From: Klebsormidium nitens
Lineage: Eukaryota > Plantae > Klebsormidiophyceae
NCBI GenBank assembly: GCA_000708835.1
Contig: DF237603.1
Location: forward strand, 1 to 46,389
Length of the DNA stretch: 46,389 nucleotides
Direction of reading: 5' to 3'
This document shows positions 30,771 through 42,612 of the stretch, in pieces (position 1 is the stretch's first letter; each line of letters begins with the position of its first letter). The notes below the pieces were generated by a model, which saw only the letters and a program-made list of their open reading frames with translations, had not been told where the DNA came from and made no database searches. Made by a program: the position numbers and the translations under genes.

Positions 30771-33672
30771 TCAAGCTTCCGACATCTCTGCTAGCCGCTT
30801 TGCTAGTTCCCTAGGATCCGCCCCTTGGAGTTCGCTGACCACCTTGCCGGCTTTGTAGAACCGAAATGTCGGCTGCAACAGGGAGACGCCAAAGCATGTC
30901 TGAGTCGTAGAAAGCGAGCGTGCTTGGCAGCCCACTCCAAGCAGAGCTTTCCACTGTAAAGCTCAGGAAAGAAGCCAAGGTTGTCAACTGGGCACTGTAC
31001 TGCCTAGGATTGAGACCCTGTCGACTGTTTGCAATTCAAACCTCGAAGTAGTAAAACCAAGGGAGCGGGTCCGAGCATGACTTGGCTCACGACTAGACAT
31101 CGGCCAGCCAAGTCTTCCGAAAGACAGGCTTTGACATGGTTTCCAGCATCTGCAGTCAGAGCGTCGCCAAAAGGTCTGATCGGAAACTGATGCGGAGAGC
31201 CAGGATCTTCCGGAATTCCAAGCGGGGAGGAATTGTTAACGTGGGCACATGAGAATAGCGTGCGGTCACTTCAAGGTCAAAGAAGAGCTGACAGATTTTA
31301 GGTTTTGCTTACCACTGCGCTGACTTCGGCATCCCGCACCGTTTTACTCAATTTGGGCTGCAAAGAACATACGTAGAAACGACGAGTAAGCAAAGGGGAG
31401 AGTTGACCAGAGATACACTCAAGGACTAGTCCCGCAAGCCCCAAGTCTGAACGATTATCCTGAGCAATGTTGACACTCAAAAGAAGTTCCGCTTTTCAGC
31501 CCTTCAATGCAATCAAAACCATTGCCTGCACAGCCCGCCAAGTTACAAGCGGCTGGTTATGAGGCTTCCGAAATTTCGTAGCGAGAGATGGCCTTTACAA
31601 TGTACTCTTTTCACACGTTCGTAGCAGTCTAGCATCAGTCTTTCGTCAGCCTGCCTTAAGACTAAGGTAGATCAACCTGGCGCACTCGGTGTGGACAAGC
31701 GGACAGCGATGCTTGAAAGTAACTAGGATGGCGGATACTGACCTCGTCGATGTCGATTTGCAGAATCTTCACGTGCTCGAGGCGCTTGCTCAGCTCGTCC
31801 AAGTAGGGCGCAATCATCCTACCTGTCAGTAAACGGTGAATGGAAAGGTTTTAGGAGTCGTTCTTGCTTGAAAAGTCAGCTTGGTCTGAGACTGGGAACT
31901 TAAACGATCTGCCTGCGGAAGAACGATCTCCAGCGGTGGTACATTGTCATTCCTCAATGACCAGACCAATGTGAACGAAAAGCAGATTCTGCAGAGGTAG
32001 CTTTTGTTCTATCAGCATCAAAACGAGATTCGAGGCGTTCGGATGGTCGTCAAACCTACGAGGTGCTTGCGAAGGATCAACCATTTTTCAGCAAACCGGA
32101 TCTGGGTTACAGAGTCTCGACCAAGAAGAAGCGAGAAGGACTGGTAGTTTCGGATGCTCACATGGACCGCACCACTGGGCTGTGAACTGCGTCAGGACGA
32201 TGGGTGGGGGGCTCCCTGAGTCTGCAAACAAAATACAGGGCATCACGGAGCAAATCTTGAATTCATGCGACTAACAGTTATCCTAGGTAAGACTAGGTAA
32301 GATTATGGGACAGAAATACATCACTGGATCTCGTAACAATTCCACATTGTTGGCCCTAATCATGATGGTACTGTGATGTCAGGTACTTGCGACCAAAAGG
32401 TGGTTGTGACGCGCATCTGCACGAACCTCATGGAATACAAGGGCAGACACACCCTGCTGAGCAAGGCCGACAAACCGTTGCTGACCTGAAAAAGTCGATT
32501 GCCGCTAAAGGAGTGACGGCCAAGCCAGCTGCCGGGAACAGCAGAAATGAAACTGGAAATGTGGATGTTCAAGTGGAGTTGCGCGAACAAGCAGCGAGCT
32601 TTTGGGTCTGAGCAAAGAAGTAGAGGAGCAGGAACGAAGGAGCTAAAGTTAGGTGGGGGCGCATACCTGTGGGAGCCTCCCATGCTCTCTTAAGTTCCTT
32701 CTCATATTCTTCGTCGCTCTTCACAGCGTGTACCTTCGAACCTTCCCCGGCTGGAACAGCTGCAAGTGGAAAAGTTTCCAACAGTCAATTGGAATCTTCT
32801 CGGGTGGATTGCTGCCCGACAACGGTGCGCTGGCGGTCACGAGGAGGGTCAATGTTTGATTGTGCTAAGAGCTGTCGTCTCACTGAAGTCTGAGTCTACA
32901 GTTGACTCACACATTTATGCCTTTCAAAGTGGGCCACATGGTCCAGGCTGCCCGAGAAAAAGAAGAGCAAAGGTCTCCAGAAGACAATTCTTGAGGCACA
33001 AATCCAAAGCATGCATGGATTCAACGGAGACGACGCTCCAAAAATGATCTCTCACTAATCCTCAAAAGTTGGATGAGCCACATCTTCCCTTGTCGTGACT
33101 GCCACATCAACAATTCAAAATGGTCAACCAGGGATCCTTCATCGCATGCACTCTGCTGAAAGATGTACCTCAATTGGAAATGGAAGCACTGTGTATGATA
33201 AAAAGTTGGTAAGCCTGCCTGCCTGCCAAAAGCTCTATTTAACATGCAGCTAGCGGCGCCTCAGCCAGTGGTGCACCAGGAAAGTCCCACTAGTGAAAAG
33301 CAGCATTGTAAGACTACTCAAGTCTCTGCAATGCTTGAAAGATGGTGAACAAGGTTTTCTCCGCTCACCACTAAAAGACCGAGCCCCTACACTTCCTTGC
33401 ATCCAGCATCCAATCTGCATCCTACTGCGAATCATCGCGTCACTTTGCACCACCGCGTCCATCAGAGGCACCAGGCAATCGCTCCCACACCGGAGCACGC
33501 TCTGACCGCTCAGAGACTCCCCTGAGGATTCTGCCAGACCCTGCATCGAGCCGCGCACTGCATTTGATGCTGCCGGGACATGTGATACACGTGAAGCGCA
33601 GCAGTGCCCTTGCAGACGGAAAAGCTGGCTGAGCGTTCGCTGCGCCTGGTGCATGACTTCCCTGCCTGCCAT
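30771..33672 (-). CDS. TRX-o: Thioredoxin, o-type (mitochondrial), ~227 aa (260 aa with optional exon)
   Basis: Minus-strand exons 33672-33369, 32759-32667, (optional 32485-32387), 32221-32162, 31822-31743, 31357-31313, 30872-30771 splice in frame. Product: ...SKVHAVKSDEEYEKELKRAWEAPT...IVLTQFTAQWCGPCRMIAPYLDELSKRLEHVKILQIDIDEPKLSKTVRDAEVSAVPTFRFYKAGKVVSELQGADPRELAKRLAEMSEA*. WCGPC is split by the intron at 32162/31822. The ~100-aa exon 1 ends in RSFS (presequence-cleavage-like). The DIDExxxSxT...AVPT insert resembles plant Trx o. Confidence 0.92.
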
Positions 33673-34019
33673 GTTTCCACCTTCCTTCAGCTCTGGGGTT
33701 CTTCTAAGTGTTCTGCAGCAAGCGGAAGGGGCGCTGCGTGCTCAATGCCAGCCGAGCAGCTTCTTGCACTGATCTTAATTGCTGAAGATTTCAGCGCCTG
33801 GCGTTGCCTGCCCCTCAAGTGACGGAAACGAGAAATATGTTGAGGGTGTGAATAGCCCGTTGAGGAATTTGCAGTCCATGCGGTGTATTCCATGTAGACT
33901 TTTTGAAAGTATTCACATGGGCATTCTCAAGTTTTGTTGGCCTTCATGCTTGGAGTCGCACCTGGTCCTCAATCACGATTCATGGGTTCATTCAACTTGA
34001 TCAACTTGCAGGAAGGGTC

Positions 34020-37000
34020 ATGGCGTCTGATCCTGGCAGGGCGTCCAGTTCTGAGCTGCATGCAACTGGCTGGCCCCAATTGCCAGAAGGGGCAGGGAAC
34101 AGCACGTCCCGGACAGCGCCTCCAGGGTTTTCCACCAATTCATCAGCTGACGGCAACAAGGGTGCAACAAGAGTTGACGGATCAGAATTGGTAGCTGAGG
34201 GGAAAGCTAGGATGGGAGGAAACAGGGAAGGGCCGGGAGCGGGGCCTCCAGGGTTTCACAACCAGCCTGGGTCTGGAAGGGGGAAGCGAGATTATGAGGG
34301 GTCCGCTGCTTCGCAGGGTGGATTGTCAAGTAGGGGGAGGGGAAGCAACAGAGGCGGGGGTTTTCCAGCGGGTGGTGGCATTGCGCGGGAGAATAACCCT
34401 GGCCAAGGCTCTCCCAATGTAAACAGGCCTGGTGTGAACGGGCCTGGTGTGAACGGGCCTGGTGCGAATGACCGCAGCTCAACCAGTACAGGAAGCTCGG
34501 GGAGCATCCTCGGCACACCTGGCATTCAGAGTGGCCAAGGACAGCAAAGAATGGAGAGGCGCAGTGGACTTGGTATCACTGGGTTGGATGCGAACGAGGC
34601 TGGAGGCCAGAATGGTCCGTATGGTCGCGTCGACGACAGCTACGGGAAGAGGCATGGCGCGAACGGCCCTCGACATCAGGAGCCCCGCTTCAATCAGAGC
34701 CACCAGACAGGGTGGGTGGAAAACCCTGCCACTAACGGGCATCCACACGAAAATGCTGACGGAGGTGCTGAGAGTGCGCGTGGGACTGCGCAAGGTTCGG
34801 ATGAAAGCCAGGGTGCGCAGCAGGGGCGGAGAGGCGGCCGAGACCGGCGGCAGGACCGGAGGAACCGTTCGGACGCCAGCGGAGGCAGCGTCCGGAGCGG
34901 CGCCTCGGTCGAACCGTCCGAAGAGCCGCGCGAGACCGGAAGCGGAGGTGGTTTGCAAGCGACGGGGTGGGAGGAAGCGTCGGTCGCAAATGCTAGCGGG
35001 ACCGGTCAAGTCGCCACCACTTTAACCATGCACAAGCCTTCAGAACTGGGTGCGAAAATGGACGAGGGTTCCGATGCACGGCCTACGGGTTGGGGGGGTG
35101 GACCGGAGCAGGCGGCGCTGCCCCCCGTTGCAACGCGTGACGCTCCCGGAGGGTCCGATTCGGGCAGCTCGGTTTCGCTCGCTTTTCGGCAGAAGAAGAG
35201 GGGGGGGCAGGGGGGCCGGCAGCAAGGTGGGCAGCAAAATGCGATTGGGGGCGGAGAGATGAGAAACCAGAGGGACAATGTGAGAGAGCAAGGCAAGCAA
35301 GGCGGTGTTACTGGTGGAGCAGTTTCAGGGAAGCAGGCTGGGGGGGTGTCAAGAGCCACTGGATGGATTGACAACAGTGGGAGGGAGACGGCAGAGGCGA
35401 CGGCTGGGAGTGCAAGATCCGCCACCAAGGGGGGGATGAGAGGTGAGGAAGCAGTAAGGCAGACTTTGGCCCCCCCAAACGTGGAAGACGCGGCGGTGAT
35501 TCGATCGACCGGGTGGAGTGGAGACATTGGGGAGAGTCAGGGGGAACTTTCTGTGGGGAGTGCGAGGCCGATACCGACAGGAGGGGGAAGGGGCGCAAAT
35601 AAAAGAAGGCAGACTGTGCCTCCCCAGGACATACGGAAGGAATCAGCTGGAGAAGGATTACAGAGTGTGGCGCATATGGGGAATGCGCCGACAGGCTGGG
35701 AAACGGATCCCGCAGGCGGTGCATCTCCTGAAGCACAAAAAGATGGTTCAAAGGCGGGAAGGAAGGGCGGGAGGGGACCTACGAAGCAGGTGATGCCGCC
35801 CCAAGACATCCGGAAAGAAGCGGCAGTGCGGCATGGCCCCCCAGGTTTCAACCAAGGTGTCCGGAACGAGGTGCGGGCCCAGGACCCCTCCCCAATTCTG
35901 ACTCGAGATGCACCCCCCCGTTCCGGTGAAGATGGCGCCACCGGATGGACCGAGCAAAGCAGCGGTGCACTTTCTGGACCGTCTGTCAGTGATGCTGACT
36001 CGAAAATGAAGGGGCAGGTGGGGCCGTCTGGTTCAAAGAAGCAGCTTCCAATGGCCCCACAGGACATCAGGAGAGACTCGGCGCATCGGGTTACCCCCCG
36101 AGAGGCGCGAGCGCAGTCGGCCCAGCCCAATCTTGTCCAGGACGTCAGGAAAGAGTCAGCCCAGCCCGTGGCTTCTCGTGATGCAGAGAAAAGAGCGGCG
36201 CAGGCTGCCCCCCTCCAGGACGCGAGGGGAGGAATGGCGCAGGTGGGAGAGAATCAGCCGGTGGCGTCAATTGGACAAGCTCCGGGTTGGGAAGCTCGGA
36301 CACCGCTTGGGGAGCCAGTTTTGCAGACGCCGGTTGGACAGGCGAAGGTCCCGGTCCAAGATGTTCGGACGAGAGGGCCTCAGACGGGGTCGAGCACGCA
36401 TGGTCGGGATCGAGCCCCGCCCGCAAACCGCATGCCTCCGCAGAACGCCGCTCCACAGAAAGACGAAAGGGGCTTCCCGAGAGAACAGCAGCCGCGCTCG
36501 GGAGCTTTTCCGAAGCGAGAGCCGGCTCCAAGGGAGGAGCGAGGTGGGGGGTCAGGAACCGGCGGTCGAAGAGAACCGGCTGCAGCGCTTTTGCCAAGCC
36601 CACAACTCACAAGCACCGGGCTCTCTGTAGGAAGTGAATCGGCCCCACTTTTGCCAAACCCGCAACCAACTGGCTGGACGAACCCCCCAGAAAGTGTGGA
36701 AGGTCCCCATTCACACCAGGCTGCCCCGAGGCGAGGGATCCTAGGCGCAATGCCCCCCTCGAGAGCATCGGGCCGGAGTTCCGACAGCAGCGGACAGAGC
36801 TCGGATGGGAGCACCCCACGTCACCGTCCGAAGGGGGGCAGATCGGAGCGCACGCAAGAGACACAGTCGCACGCTTCTGACGGGCAGGAGAGGAGTTGGG
36901 TTTCTGGGGGTGTGAATCCGACGGCTCCGGTGGGGAGTTCGGGTGGTCCGGGTTCGTCTATGGGGGGTTCGATTGCCGCTGTAGGAGGTTCCGTTTTGTC

Positions 37001-40000
37001 TGGGGCAGGTTCCGTTCCGTCTGGGGCAGGTTCCGTTCACTCTGCGGGGACTTCTGGTGCCTCTGCGGGGGGTTCATCATCCGGGGGGCAACCTTCAGCG
37101 CCCGCTCACAAGCAAACGGAAACCGGGGGCGTGCAGCCCAACCCCCCCAAAGCGTGGCAGGGGGTTTCGCCGGCCAAGTCGCCAGCGAAAGCGAAGCAGG
37201 GGGTGGTGCCTGCCAGGGGGGCGGGGAAAGGGGCGCCCGGAGGGGGGGGAGAGTGGGCCCGTTTGTGCCGTATTTGCCGCAGGACGACGTGGAGGGGGGT
37301 CTGGCTGTGGAGATGTCGAGCGAGGAGCTATTGAAGCTGCTGAAGCTGGGGGCGCAGGAGTTTTGGAAACATGGTGAGGCGGCGCGCTTCGATGTTGGTG
37401 CTGTAAAGTTGCTTCTGTTCCGTCCTTGTCAAAGTTTGCTGCCCTCTTCGTAGTCCCGACTGCTCTGAAGGGCATTTGAGGCGCTGGGAGTGACCGTGAC
37501 GTTTGATTGATCTGTCCCCTCGTATTGCATCGACAGCAATTTCGAAGTCCCGTAAACCCTTCCTCTTTGGTTGTTGCGGTACCGCTTTCTTCATGGATTC
37601 GTACGCAACTCAGACAAGCGACTCCTGCATCTCAACGGCGCCTCCTAAGCCCGCACTTCGGACGCCATTCGGACGTCGTCTCAATCGTTTGCTAGGCACT
37701 GTGGACACCATTCGGACCACACCCCATTCTCCTTCCAGCCAACCCAAAGGCATTCCGGACCCCAGTTTCACACAATTCCTTCTTTGCGTCCGTGCAGTCG
37801 CGCGGGACGACAGCCTGCCCCAATTCCTCAACTTGTACCTCCGCTTCCGCAAGCGGCCCCACGATGTCGAGGGGGATCCCTCTGGGCTCGAGAGGAGCAT
37901 CGCCGACGAGGCGGCCGCCGTGCTGCAAAAGCGGGTCTTCTTGACCCTCTTCAGACTGTAAGTTTTTTAGGCAGAAGTTAGCGATGGCCTCTGTAAGGGT
38001 GCCGTAGTACATAATAGTTTGCGGTTCTGAATCGCAATGTGAGGATTAAGGAGTGTATGTCTCTTAAGGACTCGCGAGAGAGTTTTGGGGAATTTTGATG
38101 ACCTGACTACAAGGACCTGTTTCAAAGGCTTTGTCTTTTTGGCCGCGTCTAGAAAGCGGCAGTGGTCTGCTCCCGACCCGTCTAATATTCTTCTCCGTAG
38201 CTCGTTTCGGCTCCGCTTCTACTAACAAGCTGCCAAGCCCTGGCCGTTTGAAATGCGGTACAAAAGCAAACTGCAATGTATCCCACTGTTAGCGTTGTCT
38301 ATTCCGCTCTGTGCTCTTCGTCAGCCCCTTCGCCTGATGAAAAACCCCTTGCATGGGGACATCCTCCTCAACCTTCGCAGGTTTTGTGTTTCTGTGACGT
38401 TTAATATTTAGACCGCTCCCCTTTGTTTTCCCGGTCTTGCAAAGGACCGGAGAGTAGCTAAGTCTGTCAACGTCCTAGCAGCCCTTAGACTTTCTCTGGA
38501 CGCTCTTATTTCACTGTAACGTCTGAGTGTCCAAACATTCGCGGACTTGTCCTTTCAGGTCTTCGCCTAGAGAGCCGGGCGCCGCATCCGGGGAAGTCCT
38601 GTCCCCTCGAGAGCACACCGAACTGCTGCGGAGAAAGGACCTGCTGGGCGTTCCCCAGTTGATGGACATCGCGGCGATCTACGGTGCGACCAAGCCGGAC
38701 CTGACGAGACGCCTGGTACGCACCTGTTCCCTTTCTTATTCGACAAACGGGCGTTTGTGGCTCTTACTCTCACTTTTGGCACCCGTTGAAAACCTTCGCT
38801 TTTTATTCAATTTCCTGAAGACTGCGACGACGGGCATTTGTGGTTCTCATTCTACTCATGATGAAGGTTTTCGCTTCCACCTTTAAGCTTTTCGCATAAT
38901 TCTGGATGCTTGTATTGCTGTCCGTATAGACGAACATGATGGGACTCATCTTAGGCCAGTTTTCGTCGGGTCCACAGCCCCTATGACGTCAGCACTCCCC
39001 CATGACGTCAGCCCTGACTCCAAATGTACTTCATCGCAGGTCGAAAACGTGTTTGAGAATCAGCCCGGCCACCAGGCCGCCGTGGCTGCGTGCGTGGACC
39101 CCATTCTCAACACGCTCTCTTCGATGCGCGCCCGGAGCGCGGCCGCGGTTGCGGCGCTTGGGGCCCAGCAGCCGGCCAACCAGGACGTGCCACGTGTCAG
39201 GCACAATCTGAATGAGGTCATTGATTACGTCAGCGACGTGGCGGCGACCTTGGGTGCCTTTGTGGGGGTCTACCCGGCGGTCGCAGCGGTGCTTATTCCG
39301 AAGGAGGGCGAGGGAGCAAGGTCAGTCCGTATTTGAGACTTTGGGGTAGTGAAGATAGATGAGATCAAACAGGGTACCTCTGTAAGTTGGGTATCAGGAT
39401 AGAAGTCCGTATGTGACAGCTTTGCTTGGTGCATGCCTGGAAGCATTCACAAGTCTCTCGCTCTTTGCTTCGAGAATTATGTCGTTGCTACGGTGCTTTT
39501 TCTCCGACACGAAGTGATGGGAAGCACGGAGCCATCTTTAGGTTACCTGGCAGAAGAACGTACGGATTGTGAACACGCGGAGCATTTACAGCTTCAGCAC
39601 AGATCTTGGACCACTAACTTTCCACTTGTACCGTCTCCTGACCTGCTTTATCCATCCTTTGCGCAGCCCGAAGGGGTCAAAGGAGGCCTCTTTTCAAATC
39701 CACTATAACTTCACAAGTTGCGCATGCGAAGACTTCAACCACTGATCAGTCCTGAAGTCACTCCCTGTCCACATACTTTTCCGCAGCCCGAAAGGCACGC
39801 TCCTCTCCGCGCTGGCAACCGCCCACGACCGCTTGCTCCCCACCGTCCTTTGGGGCCTCCGTTCCCTGCCCCCCAGCACTGACGTCAGCCCCGACGTCAG
39901 CCTGGCGTCAGCGGCGCTTCGGGCCTCCGAGCAGAGGCGCGCCCAGCACGCGCGTGCACGCATCGCCTCTTTGGCTTGGGCCGTACTCGAAGCCAGGTTC

Positions 40001-42612
40001 TTCGCTGCCGGGGGGGCCGGAAAGGCCGGCGGAGGAGCCCCCCAGAACGAGAGTGGCAGTGCGCTGGTGGAGGCGCTGGGTAGCCTGCGGGGAGGTGAGG
40101 ACGAGACTGAGAATTCGGACGCCGGACGGAGGGGGGCGCTTCTGCGGACGCTGGATCGGAAGAAGGACTTGAGGGGGCTGATGAGGAGGCTACAGGCGAG
40201 CGGTGAGTCGCCGCTGGAGTCATGAGGTTCCCAGCGCGTTGAGCTCTCACCATGTCATTGGGCATATCTGTTGACTGGCGATAGACGCCTTTCTTGTCAT
40301 CCAATTTTGGGATGCTGACAAACGTAGAGAGTATTGGCACCTACTTTCAGAATAAGCGAAACCGACAAAGCTGGAGCAGCAAGCTGCCGAGTGATCAACC
40401 GGTCCCGCTGACCAAAGCTTCCGCCTCTAGAAAGCTATTCATTGTGCTCTGATTTGGAAACCCTGTTATCTTTCTGGCGGGCCAAAAAGAGGAGTCAACA
40501 TTTCGTCCCGGAGAACACGTTTGGCACCAAGAGGTTTCCTCAATCAGCATCCGTCGCTGCCTTTGCAGGCAAGACTAACATCGACAGCGCCCAGCTAGAG
40601 TCCATCGACGCACTCCTGGGGCCCCCCGAAACGAAGCGTTCCGCCAGGCAGACTACCGCGAGTGGTGCATCGGCCGCAAGCGACACGGCGAGCGCAGAGG
40701 AGGAGGCCCTGCAGAAGTCCAAGCTCAGCCAGATCAAGGTACGATTCTGACGCGTGCGAAGCGTAACAAGGCCTCTTACAGCCGGAATCCGCGAGAGGTG
40801 ACTCCTTAATCAGGAGTCATCGACCTGTAGTAGCGCTCTTTTCGATGGCTTTTTTTGAAATCTGTGATCAGGGGTTGCCTCTTGCTATCCTGCTTGCTCT
40901 ACTGTTGTGAAATTCGCCTTATGCCAGAAACCCTGGCCAATTTATGTGAAGAGGCTATGTGCAGGTTGAAAGTGATTGTTCCCTTGACAGCACCTTTCTG
41001 ACTTGCAACGCGGCCCTCTCGTGTTGGTGTGTCCTCATAGACCTACAGTTTAGGTAGGATAGTTCAACGTAGGATATGGTCAGTGCCCGGCTAACGGGTA
41101 GTTTGGTGGTTGGGGTGGGTACGGATGCGGAACAGGTACATTTCCTGATTTAAGTTTTTAGGTTTGTTCTCCCCCGGGAACTATTTTTAATCTACCTAGA
41201 AACTATCCTCTATACTACAGGAGTATTTCATTCCAGCTCTACCACCGCACAGGGTTCAAGGTTGCAATAAGTGTCCTCGCCCCTGTTGTCTAAGCGTCGG
41301 AGTAAACGTTGGCCGTGTCATTATCCCAGCGCTTGTTGAGGTGGTCGCTTATTCCGGAATGTGCCCAATCCTTTCCGCTTACAAAATCGACGATTCTGAT
41401 TAGACCATACTGGGTCGGCTTTACTTTAGAATCTTAGGTTCCGCTGTTCATGAAAGTTGCGTTTTCATTTATTACTAAGCTAATCCGGCTTAACGGCGCT
41501 GCTAACAGGACCTCCTTCCCGACTACGGCGACGGATTTTTGGCCGTCTGTTTGGACGCTTACGACAACGACGCGGAACAGGTCATCGCGCACCTCCTGGA
41601 CGGGAACCTCTCCCCGGCACTCGCGGCACTTGACACCAAAATGATGGAGAAGCCGCGGCCGCAGGCCGAGCCCAAGCTTGGTGTCAAGGATAAAGGCAAG
41701 GCGAAAGTGGTGGAAGAAGCGGCGGAGACGGGCGGGGTTAGCAGCCGGAGTCAAGGGGTTAAGGGAGGGTTTGGCGAAGCAGGTCCGAGCGGCTCGTCGA
41801 CCGCAGGCGCTTCGTCGGTCGTTCCCGGCACTTCGTCGGCTGCCGTGAGCGCTTCGTCCTCTGTCCCGGGCGCTTCGTCGTCGGCGTCGGGCGCTTCCGA
41901 GGCGGCGAAACGCTCGAGCGCGGACCAGTCGGGGCGTTACGTCCGGCGCGACCGGGCGCCGTCGGACGCGGTCGCGCTGCTCGACGCGCGCGGCAAGGGC
42001 GACGAGCGGCTGCGGAAGATGGCGACCGAGTACGAGTACGAGGACGAGTACGACGACTCGTTCGACGAGCTGACGACGTACGGAACGGACGCCGGGGACG
42101 AGGAGGGGCTCGACGCGGCGGTCGCAAAAGTCCGGGGGGGTGCCGCCGTTGCGCCCACCGGGTGGGGGGAGCAGAAGGGGGCGGCGCCGTCCCCCCCGAA
42201 GCGGAACCCGGGTCCCCCAGGGGCGAAGAAGAGCGGGCCGCAGTTTTACGTCAAGGACGGAAAGAACTACAGCTACAAGGTGGCCGGATCGGTGGCGGTG
42301 GAGTCGGTGGAAGCCGCGGCGGTGATGAAAACGGAGCAGGAGGCGCTCATTCACGGCCTGGGCGCGGGGGGCAACGTGCCGCATGTGAATGCGCGCGAGT
42401 CGGAGGAGAGCGGGTCGGAAGAAGAGGGCGAGGGGGAGGGTGGGGAGCCCGGCCCGGGGGGGAGAGGAAGAGGGGGCGGAAGAGGGGGGGGGAGAGGAGG
42501 CGCGGGGAGGGGCTCGTTCGCGCGGAAGGAGCAGAACAAGAGCAGCGTCGCGAATCACCGGAGGAAGGACCGGGCGACCGCGAAGTTCGTCAAGGCCGTC
42601 GGGGGGTTCTGA
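34020..42612 (+). CDS. ASCC2: Activating signal cointegrator 1 complex subunit 2 (ASCC2)-like CUE-domain protein with very long disordered N-terminus, 7 exons, ~1,880 aa (needs +1 nt near 37242-37249)
   Basis: Exons 34020-37373, 37798-37957, 38559-38715, 39040-39320, 39787-40202, 40569-40738, 41509-42612. Conserved blocks: FVPYLPQD...LLKL..QEFWKHVARDDSLPQFLNLYLRFRKRPHD; VFLTLFRLSS; LMDIAAIYG; CUE domain QIKDLLPDYGDGFLAVCLDAYDNDAEQVIAHLLDGNL; YEYEDEYDDSFD; QFYVKDGKNYSYKVAGS; ARKEQNKSSVANHRRKDRATAK. Exon 1 changes frame around the G8 run. Confidence 0.88.
34418..34470 (+). repeat. Coding 15-bp tandem repeat (VNGPG) x ~3
   Basis: gtaaacaggcctggt gtgaacgggcctggt gtgaacgggcctggt gcgaat. Confidence 0.85.
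41509..41640 (+). other. CUE ubiquitin-binding domain of ASCC2
   Basis: DLLPDYGDGFLAVCLDAYDNDAEQVIAHLLDGNL: LP and LL signature positions of CUE, as in ASCC2/Cue3. Confidence 0.88.

Follow-up and report, generated by a model that had tools for sequence, protein, structure and literature searches.

A long disordered arm with recurrent TGW and PPGF motifs is very probably fused to ASCC2 in Klebsormidium nitens

Structure and identity of the locus

We analysed a stretch of 46,389 nucleotides from the alga Klebsormidium nitens (assembly GCA_000708835.1, contig DF237603.1; hereafter the window), in which the forward strand carries a gene for ASCC2 preceded by a long, tryptophan-containing arm. Within the ASC-1/RQT complex, ASCC2 is the subunit with the CUE domain and reads K63-ubiquitin on collided ribosomes; in the human protein the N-terminal helical domain is the region that binds ASCC3. 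Positions 34020–42612 very probably form a single gene of seven exons, in which the arm and ASCC2 are fused into an ASCC2 of about 1,880 residues. The open reading frame (ORF) that holds the arm runs from 33903 to 37334 on the + strand and has its first ATG at 34020. The exons are the following.

34020–37372, + strand: exon 1, comprising the start codon, the arm of ~1,078 residues and the first 38 residues of ASCC2 (PFVPYLPQDD...FWKH); from the ORF and RNA contigs
37797–37957, + strand: ASCC2 exon 2; GT..AG joints, RNA contigs from four runs
38559–38714, + strand: ASCC2 exon 3; RNA contigs
39039–39320, + strand: ASCC2 exon 4; RNA contigs and translation
39787–40202, + strand: ASCC2 exon 5; the start is a loose end of an RNA contig, the donor is inferred
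40569–40738, + strand: ASCC2 exon 6; both ends from GT/AG sites, reading frame and the related locus L001
41509–42612, + strand: last exon, containing the larger part of the CUE domain, two conserved blocks (YEYEDEYDDSFD and PQFYVKDGKNYSYKV), the RGG tail and the stop codon

The RNA contigs come from four runs, which were identified as RNA by their spliced contigs. They set the introns at 37373–37796, 37958–38558 and 38715–39038, all of which are GT..AG. The exons at 39787–40202, 40569–40738 and 41509–42612 were placed from the reading frame, the splice sites and L001, a locus described below.

Single ASCC2 exons gave no Pfam match, except that the last exon alone, once its true start was used, scored 22.2 bits for the CUE family, against a cut-off of 21.1. 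The same exon matches the structure of the human ASCC2 CUE domain (2di0_A) with an E value of 1.3e-9 over 46 residues, and among its 129 homologues ASCC2 is the usual name wherever a source name is given. The spliced core of 800 residues aligns over its full length with a land-plant ASCC2 transcript (L003), starting at FVPYLPQD from core residue 2, with 43% identity over 165 residues (E 7e-27) and then 29% over 673 residues (E 4e-80). The FVPYLPQD start of the core pairs with about residue 102 of the land-plant protein. Two blocks downstream of the CUE domain, YEYEDEYDDSFD and PQFYVKDGKNYSYKVAGS, show little or no variation in our alignment of homologues (A1). Judged by these matches, the exons downstream of the arm encode ASCC2, as an initial annotation made from the DNA letters alone had proposed.

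The arm and its motifs

Translation of 34020–37253 gives an arm of 1,078 residues with 12 tryptophans, ten of which stand in GW, nine as TGW and one as PGW. The codons of these ten lie at 34071, 34713, 34968, 35091, 35364, 35514, 35697, 35946, 36288 and 36675, exactly the counts and positions that the initial annotation had given. With glycine at 18.2% and threonine at 4.9% of the arm, an excess this large has a binomial probability of 1.8e-6 in the case of GW and 7.8e-17 in that of TGW; in 5,000 shuffles of the arm neither observed count was ever reached. The motifs are spaced by 41–214 residues.

34065–34073, + strand: TGW motif 1 (HATGWPQL), at the same position in L001
34707–34715, + strand: TGW motif 2
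34962–34970, + strand: TGW motif 3
35085–35093, + strand: TGW motif 4 (DARPTGWG; in L001 DVRPMGWG)
35358–35366, + strand: TGW motif 5 (RATGWIDNS; in L001 QATGWVDES)
35508–35516, + strand: TGW motif 6
35691–35699, + strand: TGW motif 7
35940–35948, + strand: TGW motif 8
36282–36290, + strand: PGW motif 9
36669–36677, + strand: TGW motif 10 (QPTGWTNP; in L001 EPTGWTEP)

No tandem or dispersed DNA repeat was found in the arm region, and the threonine and glycine codons of TGW vary from copy to copy, with all four synonymous forms in use. On these grounds we rejected a recent DNA repeat as the origin of the array; the recurrence of TGW therefore lies at the level of the protein.

Two further motifs recur in the arm. 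PPGF occurs in three copies where 0.02 would be expected, and satisfies the definition of the PPG-Phi ligand (PMC6648886). PQDIR is over-represented as well, with three exact copies and six looser ones. We know of no ligand for its extended form, (P)PQD[IVA]R[KR][ED].

34119–34130, + strand: PPGF motif 1, of the GYF-domain ligand type, aligned with a PPGF of L001
34245–34256, + strand: PPGF motif 2, aligned with a PPGF of L001
35838–35849, + strand: PPGF motif 3
35619–36368, + strand: zone of the second motif, six copies of (P)PQD[IVA]R, in fuller form (P)PQD[IVA]R[KR][ED]; L001 has two copies directly before its last TGW

The arm is rich in G, S, A, P, R and Q, with 12.7% hydrophobic residues and a net positive charge (125 K and R against 101 D and E). 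Its aromatic residues number only 23 and are scattered over its length. Several RGG tracts lie in the arm and others in the C-terminal tail of ASCC2, so the tracts that had been reported at both ends of the protein were recovered. Pfam places no family in the arm at E values up to 0.1. A structure prediction with AlphaFold2, run on the single sequence with no alignment, gave a mean predicted local distance difference test score (pLDDT) of 32 and no secondary structure. The composition and the model fit an intrinsically disordered arm of low complexity, which is how the region had been described at the outset.

Conservation of the fusion and of the motifs in a relative

L001 was reached through P0001, the homologue that best matches the last exon (59% identity). 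This locus lies on a 128-kb JGI metagenome contig, and its ASCC2 exons are colinear with those of the window at a DNA identity of 68–82%. Here a single ORF without interruption starts at an ATG (MAVNPERE...), passes through an arm of 767 residues and continues into ...KAKQGVIPARGAGRGAQGPPRVGPFVPYLPQDEVEGG...FWKH, after which the same GT donor follows. The ORF passes from the arm into ...RVGPFVPYLPQDEVEGG (FVPYLPQDE), and the position of the intron after FWKH is shared with K. nitens. As far as sequence comparison can take it, L001 settles the fusion of the arm to ASCC2.

The two arms have diverged widely. Their DNA does not align, and BLASTP aligns only the N-terminal 88 residues (40% identity) and the C-terminal 38 (61%), in local matches of 50 and 43 bits. 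The N-terminal aligned stretch contains HATGWPQL and two PPGF, and the two arms have an MA..P.R start in common. Ten tryptophans lie in the arm of L001, eight of them in GW and seven in TGW (P about 5e-13), together with two PPGF and PQDVRKQLPPQDIR directly before the last TGW. Four copies of the tryptophan motif share their flanks between the two arms: HATGWPQL is found in both, and DARPTGWG, ATGWIDNS and PTGWTNP of K. nitens correspond to DVRPMGWG, ATGWVDES and PTGWTEP of L001. Aligners tend to anchor on tryptophan, and we therefore placed weight on this shared context and not on the count of matching columns. In L001 eight of the nine tryptophan motifs (eight GW and one MEW), as counted by eye, have a D or E among the three residues that follow the tryptophan.

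Positions 2570–2850 of L001 (arm residues about 410–510) hold a local repeat of ~22 residues, ATGWNE.GG....Q.K...., which comprises four TGW and one MEW at a spacing of 18–24 residues. This repeat shows that the number of TGW copies turns over, with growth by small duplications. Conservation of TGW over the spacers had been named beforehand as a test of the initial annotation; it holds for one relative, L001, in which the spacers lie beyond BLAST alignment. In this one relative, the persistence of TGW and PPGF is the pattern expected of selected short linear motifs in a fast-evolving disordered region. The pair of arms is a clean example of short motifs that persist while a 1,000-residue spacer diverges beyond recognition.

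A reading-frame break at a run of G

As assembled, the arm is read in frame 0, which ends at a stop codon at 37332–37334, and is offset by one base from FVPYLPQDD, which is in frame 2. The break maps to a homopolymer.

37242–37249, + strand: run of eight G (G8) at which the frame slips from 0 to 2; from the three-frame translation and the L001 alignment

A codon-usage scan finds frame 0 coding to about 37230 and frame 2 thereafter, with the best change point at 37242–37254. In frame 2 the stretch from the upstream stop (just before 36896) to FVPYLPQD lacks an ATG, so ASCC2 has no start of its own there. At the junction L001 reads GCG CAG GGG CCA CCG AGA GTG and the window reads GCGCCCGGAGGGGGGGGAGAGTG; because the window is 2 nucleotides longer at this place than the in-frame L001, one extra base would restore its frame. 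Such a base at the G run would yield ...GAPGGGG-RVGPFVPYLPQDD, and the predicted junction peptide of the fused protein is ...GAPGGGGRVGPFVPY....

RNA contigs extend from 34012 or 34019 to 37195–37213, and again from 37242–37268 onwards, colinear with the window and without differences. In all four runs the arm is thereby seen as an expressed, intronless exon. RNA depth on the arm and on the ASCC2 side was 53 and 55, 114 and 110, 43.5 and 60.7, and 26.9 and 41.6 in the respective runs. An intron that would restore the frame was rejected, as only 28 nucleotides are left between the colinear contigs (37213/37242), which is too short. The initial annotation had fused the arm to ASCC2 and had named 34020–37373 as a single exon to be confirmed. 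The fusion is upheld by the single ORF of L001, although a one-base correction is needed at G8; the RNA contigs show no joints on either side of 37214–37241, and 34020–37373 is not one open frame in the assembly.

Assemblies based on 454 reads are known to miscount homopolymers, and the slip at G8 is most likely an error of this kind. It is a probable assembly error because L001 reads from the arm into ASCC2 as an uninterrupted ORF. The published assembly of K. nitens NIES-2285 was built from 454 and Illumina reads with Newbler (PMC4052687). A hidden homopolymer error is thus able to split such a gene in an assembly.

Read by eye, the stretch 37214–37249 (G6 C G4 AAA G4 ... G8) has a quadruplex-like appearance on the sense strand and might hinder reverse transcription or sequencing. 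The site of the frame slip lies concealed in it. In run X3, a contig of 200 nucleotides reads 37026–37195 and then 37026–37055 again, which makes a circular path of 170 nucleotides in the assembly graph. This path could be a template-switch artefact near the G-rich zone, a local duplication in the sample or a circular RNA.

Distribution of the arm

In land plants, ASCC2 (four loci and one database protein) has 82–115 residues before FV.YLPQDEA and no GW among them, which bears out the short N-terminus of ~100 residues given in the initial annotation. No arm was found in the chlorophyte-type loci (L019, L022, L023, L026 and L028), nor was a further armed relative found among 22 metagenome loci and four further loci of land plants and chlorophytes. 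By comparison with these land-plant and chlorophyte loci, the arm is restricted to this lineage. Searches with the arm only were blank, whether by word search, by phmmer against 1.84 billion representatives or by word search with residues 1–90. They carry no weight as evidence of absence, because even the true orthologue L001 scores only about 50 bits, too little to be significant against databases so large. L001 was found solely through the conserved last exon; the route through a neighbouring exon worked where the search with the arm sequence failed.

One other homologue of the core deserves mention. P0094, a fragment of 552 residues from an ENA contig of 4 kb, covers the C-terminal part of ASCC2 and has a PPGF (TVPPGFTS) and a GGW after the CUE domain. 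Its source may be another alga with similar motifs; the short contig does not extend to the N-terminus.

A tryptophan motif downstream of the CUE domain

An eleventh motif, PTGWG, had been noted after the CUE domain, and its tryptophan codon was located at 42163.

42157–42165, + strand: post-CUE TGW (APTGWGEQ), tryptophan codon 42163; L001 here reads TATGWEEQ

In the aligned land-plant sequences this position is taken by GKSWWEES, by GKSWGTET or by a shifted PRW, and in one of them tryptophan is absent. Many land-plant ASCC2 proteins carry GKSW[GEA]TE at this place, and about a third of the land-plant sequences keep it. At least one tryptophan is present in the linker in 97 of the 98 homologues that have both anchor blocks. 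In the land-plant proteins (P0002–P0120), the linker from EYDDSFD to PQFYVKDG nearly always keeps [SN]SKW[GN]S[RK] before PQFYVKDG. To our knowledge no function has been assigned to the conserved linker tryptophan in land-plant ASCC2. The post-CUE TGW may be an old feature of ASCC2 with a partner of its own.

Discussion

On the sequences compared here, the arm is real and conserved, and the arm-bearing ASCC2 combines known kinds of protein, namely ASCC2 and an adaptor arm of the GW182/ZNF598 type. With canonical ASCC2 and yeast Cue3 (Rqt3) it shares the CUE domain, the blocks YEYEDEYDDSFD and PQFYVKDGKNYSYKV, and the N-terminal helical domain that FV.YLPQD initiates. It differs from them in what precedes the motif: 1,078 residues in K. 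nitens and 767 in L001, as against 82–115 at the land-plant loci and no arm at the chlorophyte loci. The Argonaute-binding domain of GW182/TNRC6 is similarly a long disordered region with many glycine-flanked tryptophans, and GW182/TNRC6 also unites a GIGYF-type PPG-Phi motif and a ubiquitin-associated-type domain in the same protein. However, the K. nitens arm has no homology to it and no UBA, PAM2, RRM or silencing domain (Pfam is blank), and would be a functional analogue at best; its motif density appears lower than that of GW182, and its core is a strict TGW, whereas that of GW182/TNRC6 is a mixture of GW, WG and GWG. In the hook regions of NRPE1, SPT5L, SDE3 and SGS3 the motifs likewise persist while spacers and copy number evolve fast, and the tryptophans lie in disordered sequence, often with acidic residues nearby. 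These proteins act in RNA-directed DNA methylation or in the amplification of small interfering RNA (siRNA), and unlike ASCC2 none of them is a ribosome-quality-control factor. The PPGF or PPGL motifs through which ZNF598, TTP and HPat recruit GIGYF-4EHP are the same tetrapeptide, a putative ligand in K. nitens, and are likewise multicopy, disordered and on a factor of the ribosome-collision pathway. The placement differs: ZNF598 is the E3 ligase that writes the ubiquitin mark, and in K. nitens the motif is carried by ASCC2, its reader.

Our preferred reading, on which we consider the case evenly balanced, is that the arm with its TGW and PPGF motifs would make of a one-gene ASCC2 a multivalent docking scaffold that recruits silencing or decay factors, the frame break being an assembly error. 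The scaffold would be built of short linear motifs (ten tryptophan motifs of the [AP]TGW type, mostly with an acidic residue after them, three PPGF, several PPQDIR and the RGG tracts). The CUE domain would keep the protein on ubiquitin-marked stalled ribosomes, the tryptophan motifs would recruit proteins with tryptophan pockets, Argonaute and/or CAF40 of CCR4-NOT, and PPGF would bring in a translational repressor with a GYF domain, of the GIGYF/EXA1 type. Ribosome rescue would in this way be coupled to silencing or decay of the offending mRNA, and the arm, though unrelated to the adaptor regions of GW182/TNRC6 and ZNF598, would act as they do. Roles of such motifs in other proteins are on record. 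PPG-Phi is a GYF-domain ligand that ZNF598, TTP and GW182 use to recruit GIGYF-4EHP (PMC6648886), and GIGYF2-4EHP is active at collided ribosomes (10.1101/792994; PMC7381030). Tryptophans in GW/WG in disordered regions bind pockets of Argonaute, plant AGO1 included, where nearby negative charge matters (10.1101/2025.10.18.683247), and GW182 uses the tryptophan pockets of CAF40 (PMC5303829).

Several other accounts of the arm have to be weighed against this one. A tentative possibility is that the TGW motifs are Argonaute hooks proper, through which the arm would link the RNA-induced silencing complex (RISC) directly to RQT, for example to resolve or exploit ribosomes stalled against mRNA-bound RISC. 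The conserved GW tryptophans are spaced along a predicted disordered region and often followed by acidic residues, and the criteria proposed for partners of the plant AGO1 pocket are a conserved tryptophan in a disordered region and negative charge (10.1101/2025.10.18.683247); moreover, AGO-microRNA-SGS3 complexes stall ribosomes in plants (10.1101/2020.09.10.288902). The strict Thr-Gly-Trp core is nevertheless foreign to known Argonaute hooks, tryptophan pockets exist on CAF40 too, and a full-text literature search found no paper that ties ASCC2 to Argonaute. The AGO1 pocket preprint also cautions that condensation is another way in which aromatic residues of disordered regions can act (10.1101/2025.10.18.683247). 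It is unlikely that the arm has no specific partner at all and is an RGG-rich RNA-binding or condensate region, whose tryptophans would act as aromatic stickers that concentrate RQT on stalled polysomes. Its G/S/Q/R/P-rich, net positive composition, the 23 dispersed aromatics and the several RGG tracts would suit such a role, as would its full disorder in the AlphaFold2 model and the fast evolution of its length and sequence; yet stickers need no fixed three-residue context, and nine of the ten GW are TGW, with the context kept in L001, where PPGF and PPQDIR are preserved as exact strings. Quite unlikely, in our judgement, is an arm that multiplies an older ASCC2 motif and adds avidity for a partner within ASC-1/RQT or the ribosome (ASCC3, TRIP4, or a ribosomal or ubiquitin-linked surface). 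The alignment of APTGWGEQ (TATGWEEQ in L001) with land-plant GKSW[GEA]TE and the near-universal linker tryptophan (97 of 98) speak for it, but the SW-acidic copy occurs in only about a third of land-plant sequences and the near-universal tryptophan belongs to a different, basic motif, SKW[GN]S[RK]. We also know of no receptor for a tryptophan motif on record in RQT. Kinesin-light-chain W-acidic motifs and LC3-interacting-region motifs, compared by eye, were rejected, as the glycine before the tryptophan and the residues that follow it do not fit.

The frame break itself invites another explanation, namely that it is real. The arm would then be a separate protein ending at 37334, with ASCC2 made through a −1 frameshift on G GGG GGA or through non-AUG initiation, or else the allele would be broken. 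The given sequence is out of frame, eight G are compatible with the RNA contigs, the run formally matches the X XXY YYZ pattern of slippery sites and 37216–37249 resembles, by eye, a quadruplex-forming sequence. We nonetheless hold a real break to be very improbable. L001 reads through in frame, with no run of G at that place; the 92 nucleotides downstream of the run (−27 kcal/mol, z = +0.74) fold no better than shuffles; and the similar RNA depth on both sides argues against two separate transcripts. Slippery sites made of G only are inefficient in eukaryotes, and a ribosome-quality-control factor made solely by a rare frameshift is implausible. A programmed −1 frameshift was rejected as the principal explanation, as there is no stable downstream fold and the relative needs no shift. 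The docking scaffold on a one-gene ASCC2 has, for its part, a number of observations weighing against it. All four RNA assemblies break within 37214–37241 and one contig starts exactly at 37242; because no RNA contig crosses that interval, both the single transcript and the number of G in the run are deduced rather than observed. The density of about one motif per 100 residues appears below that of classical hook regions, a D or E lies within the three residues that follow the tryptophan in only six of the ten K. nitens copies, and we know of no requirement of the Argonaute or CAF40 pockets for a fixed threonine at −2. The conservation of the motifs is drawn from a single armed relative, and the similar tryptophan motif that many land-plant ASCC2 proteins have in their C-terminal linker hints at a partner intrinsic to ASCC2 biology.

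In animals the coupling of ribosome collisions to mRNA silencing is divided among several proteins, with ZNF598 and EDF1 recruiting GIGYF2-4EHP. In plants, ribosome stalling beside RISC controls siRNA amplification by a poorly defined mechanism (10.1101/2025.10.18.683247), and our literature search found no relevant paper on ASCC2 in plant ribosome quality control. An ASCC2 with tryptophan and PPGF docking motifs would be a one-protein link between collision and silencing, in an alga of a land-plant-related lineage. The most specific form of the proposal, that the Klebsormidium ribosome-rescue complex is physically wired to RNA silencing by an ASCC2 arm whose TGW motifs bind Argonaute and whose PPGF motifs bind a GIGYF/EXA1-type repressor, strikes us as unlikely. 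If it were true, collided ribosomes, including those blocked by RISC, would be split while the same mRNA goes to silencing, decay or siRNA amplification, and a GW182-like adaptor would have been invented independently on a ribosome-quality-control factor.

Transcripts upstream of the arm

The arm contig of run X6 begins at 34012, after ttgcag, and is preceded there by 8 unmatched letters; no donor site carrying those letters was found in the window. An extra upstream coding exon was rejected, as the other contigs are colinear through 33980–34019 and the MA..P.R start is kept in L001. In run X3 one contig is unbroken from before 33400 to 37055 and links the upstream transcript to the arm exon; in the other runs the upstream transcript ends at 33710–33823. 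These contigs of the region 33400–34019 point to read-through, to untranslated regions that overlap or to a minor alternative 5' exon.

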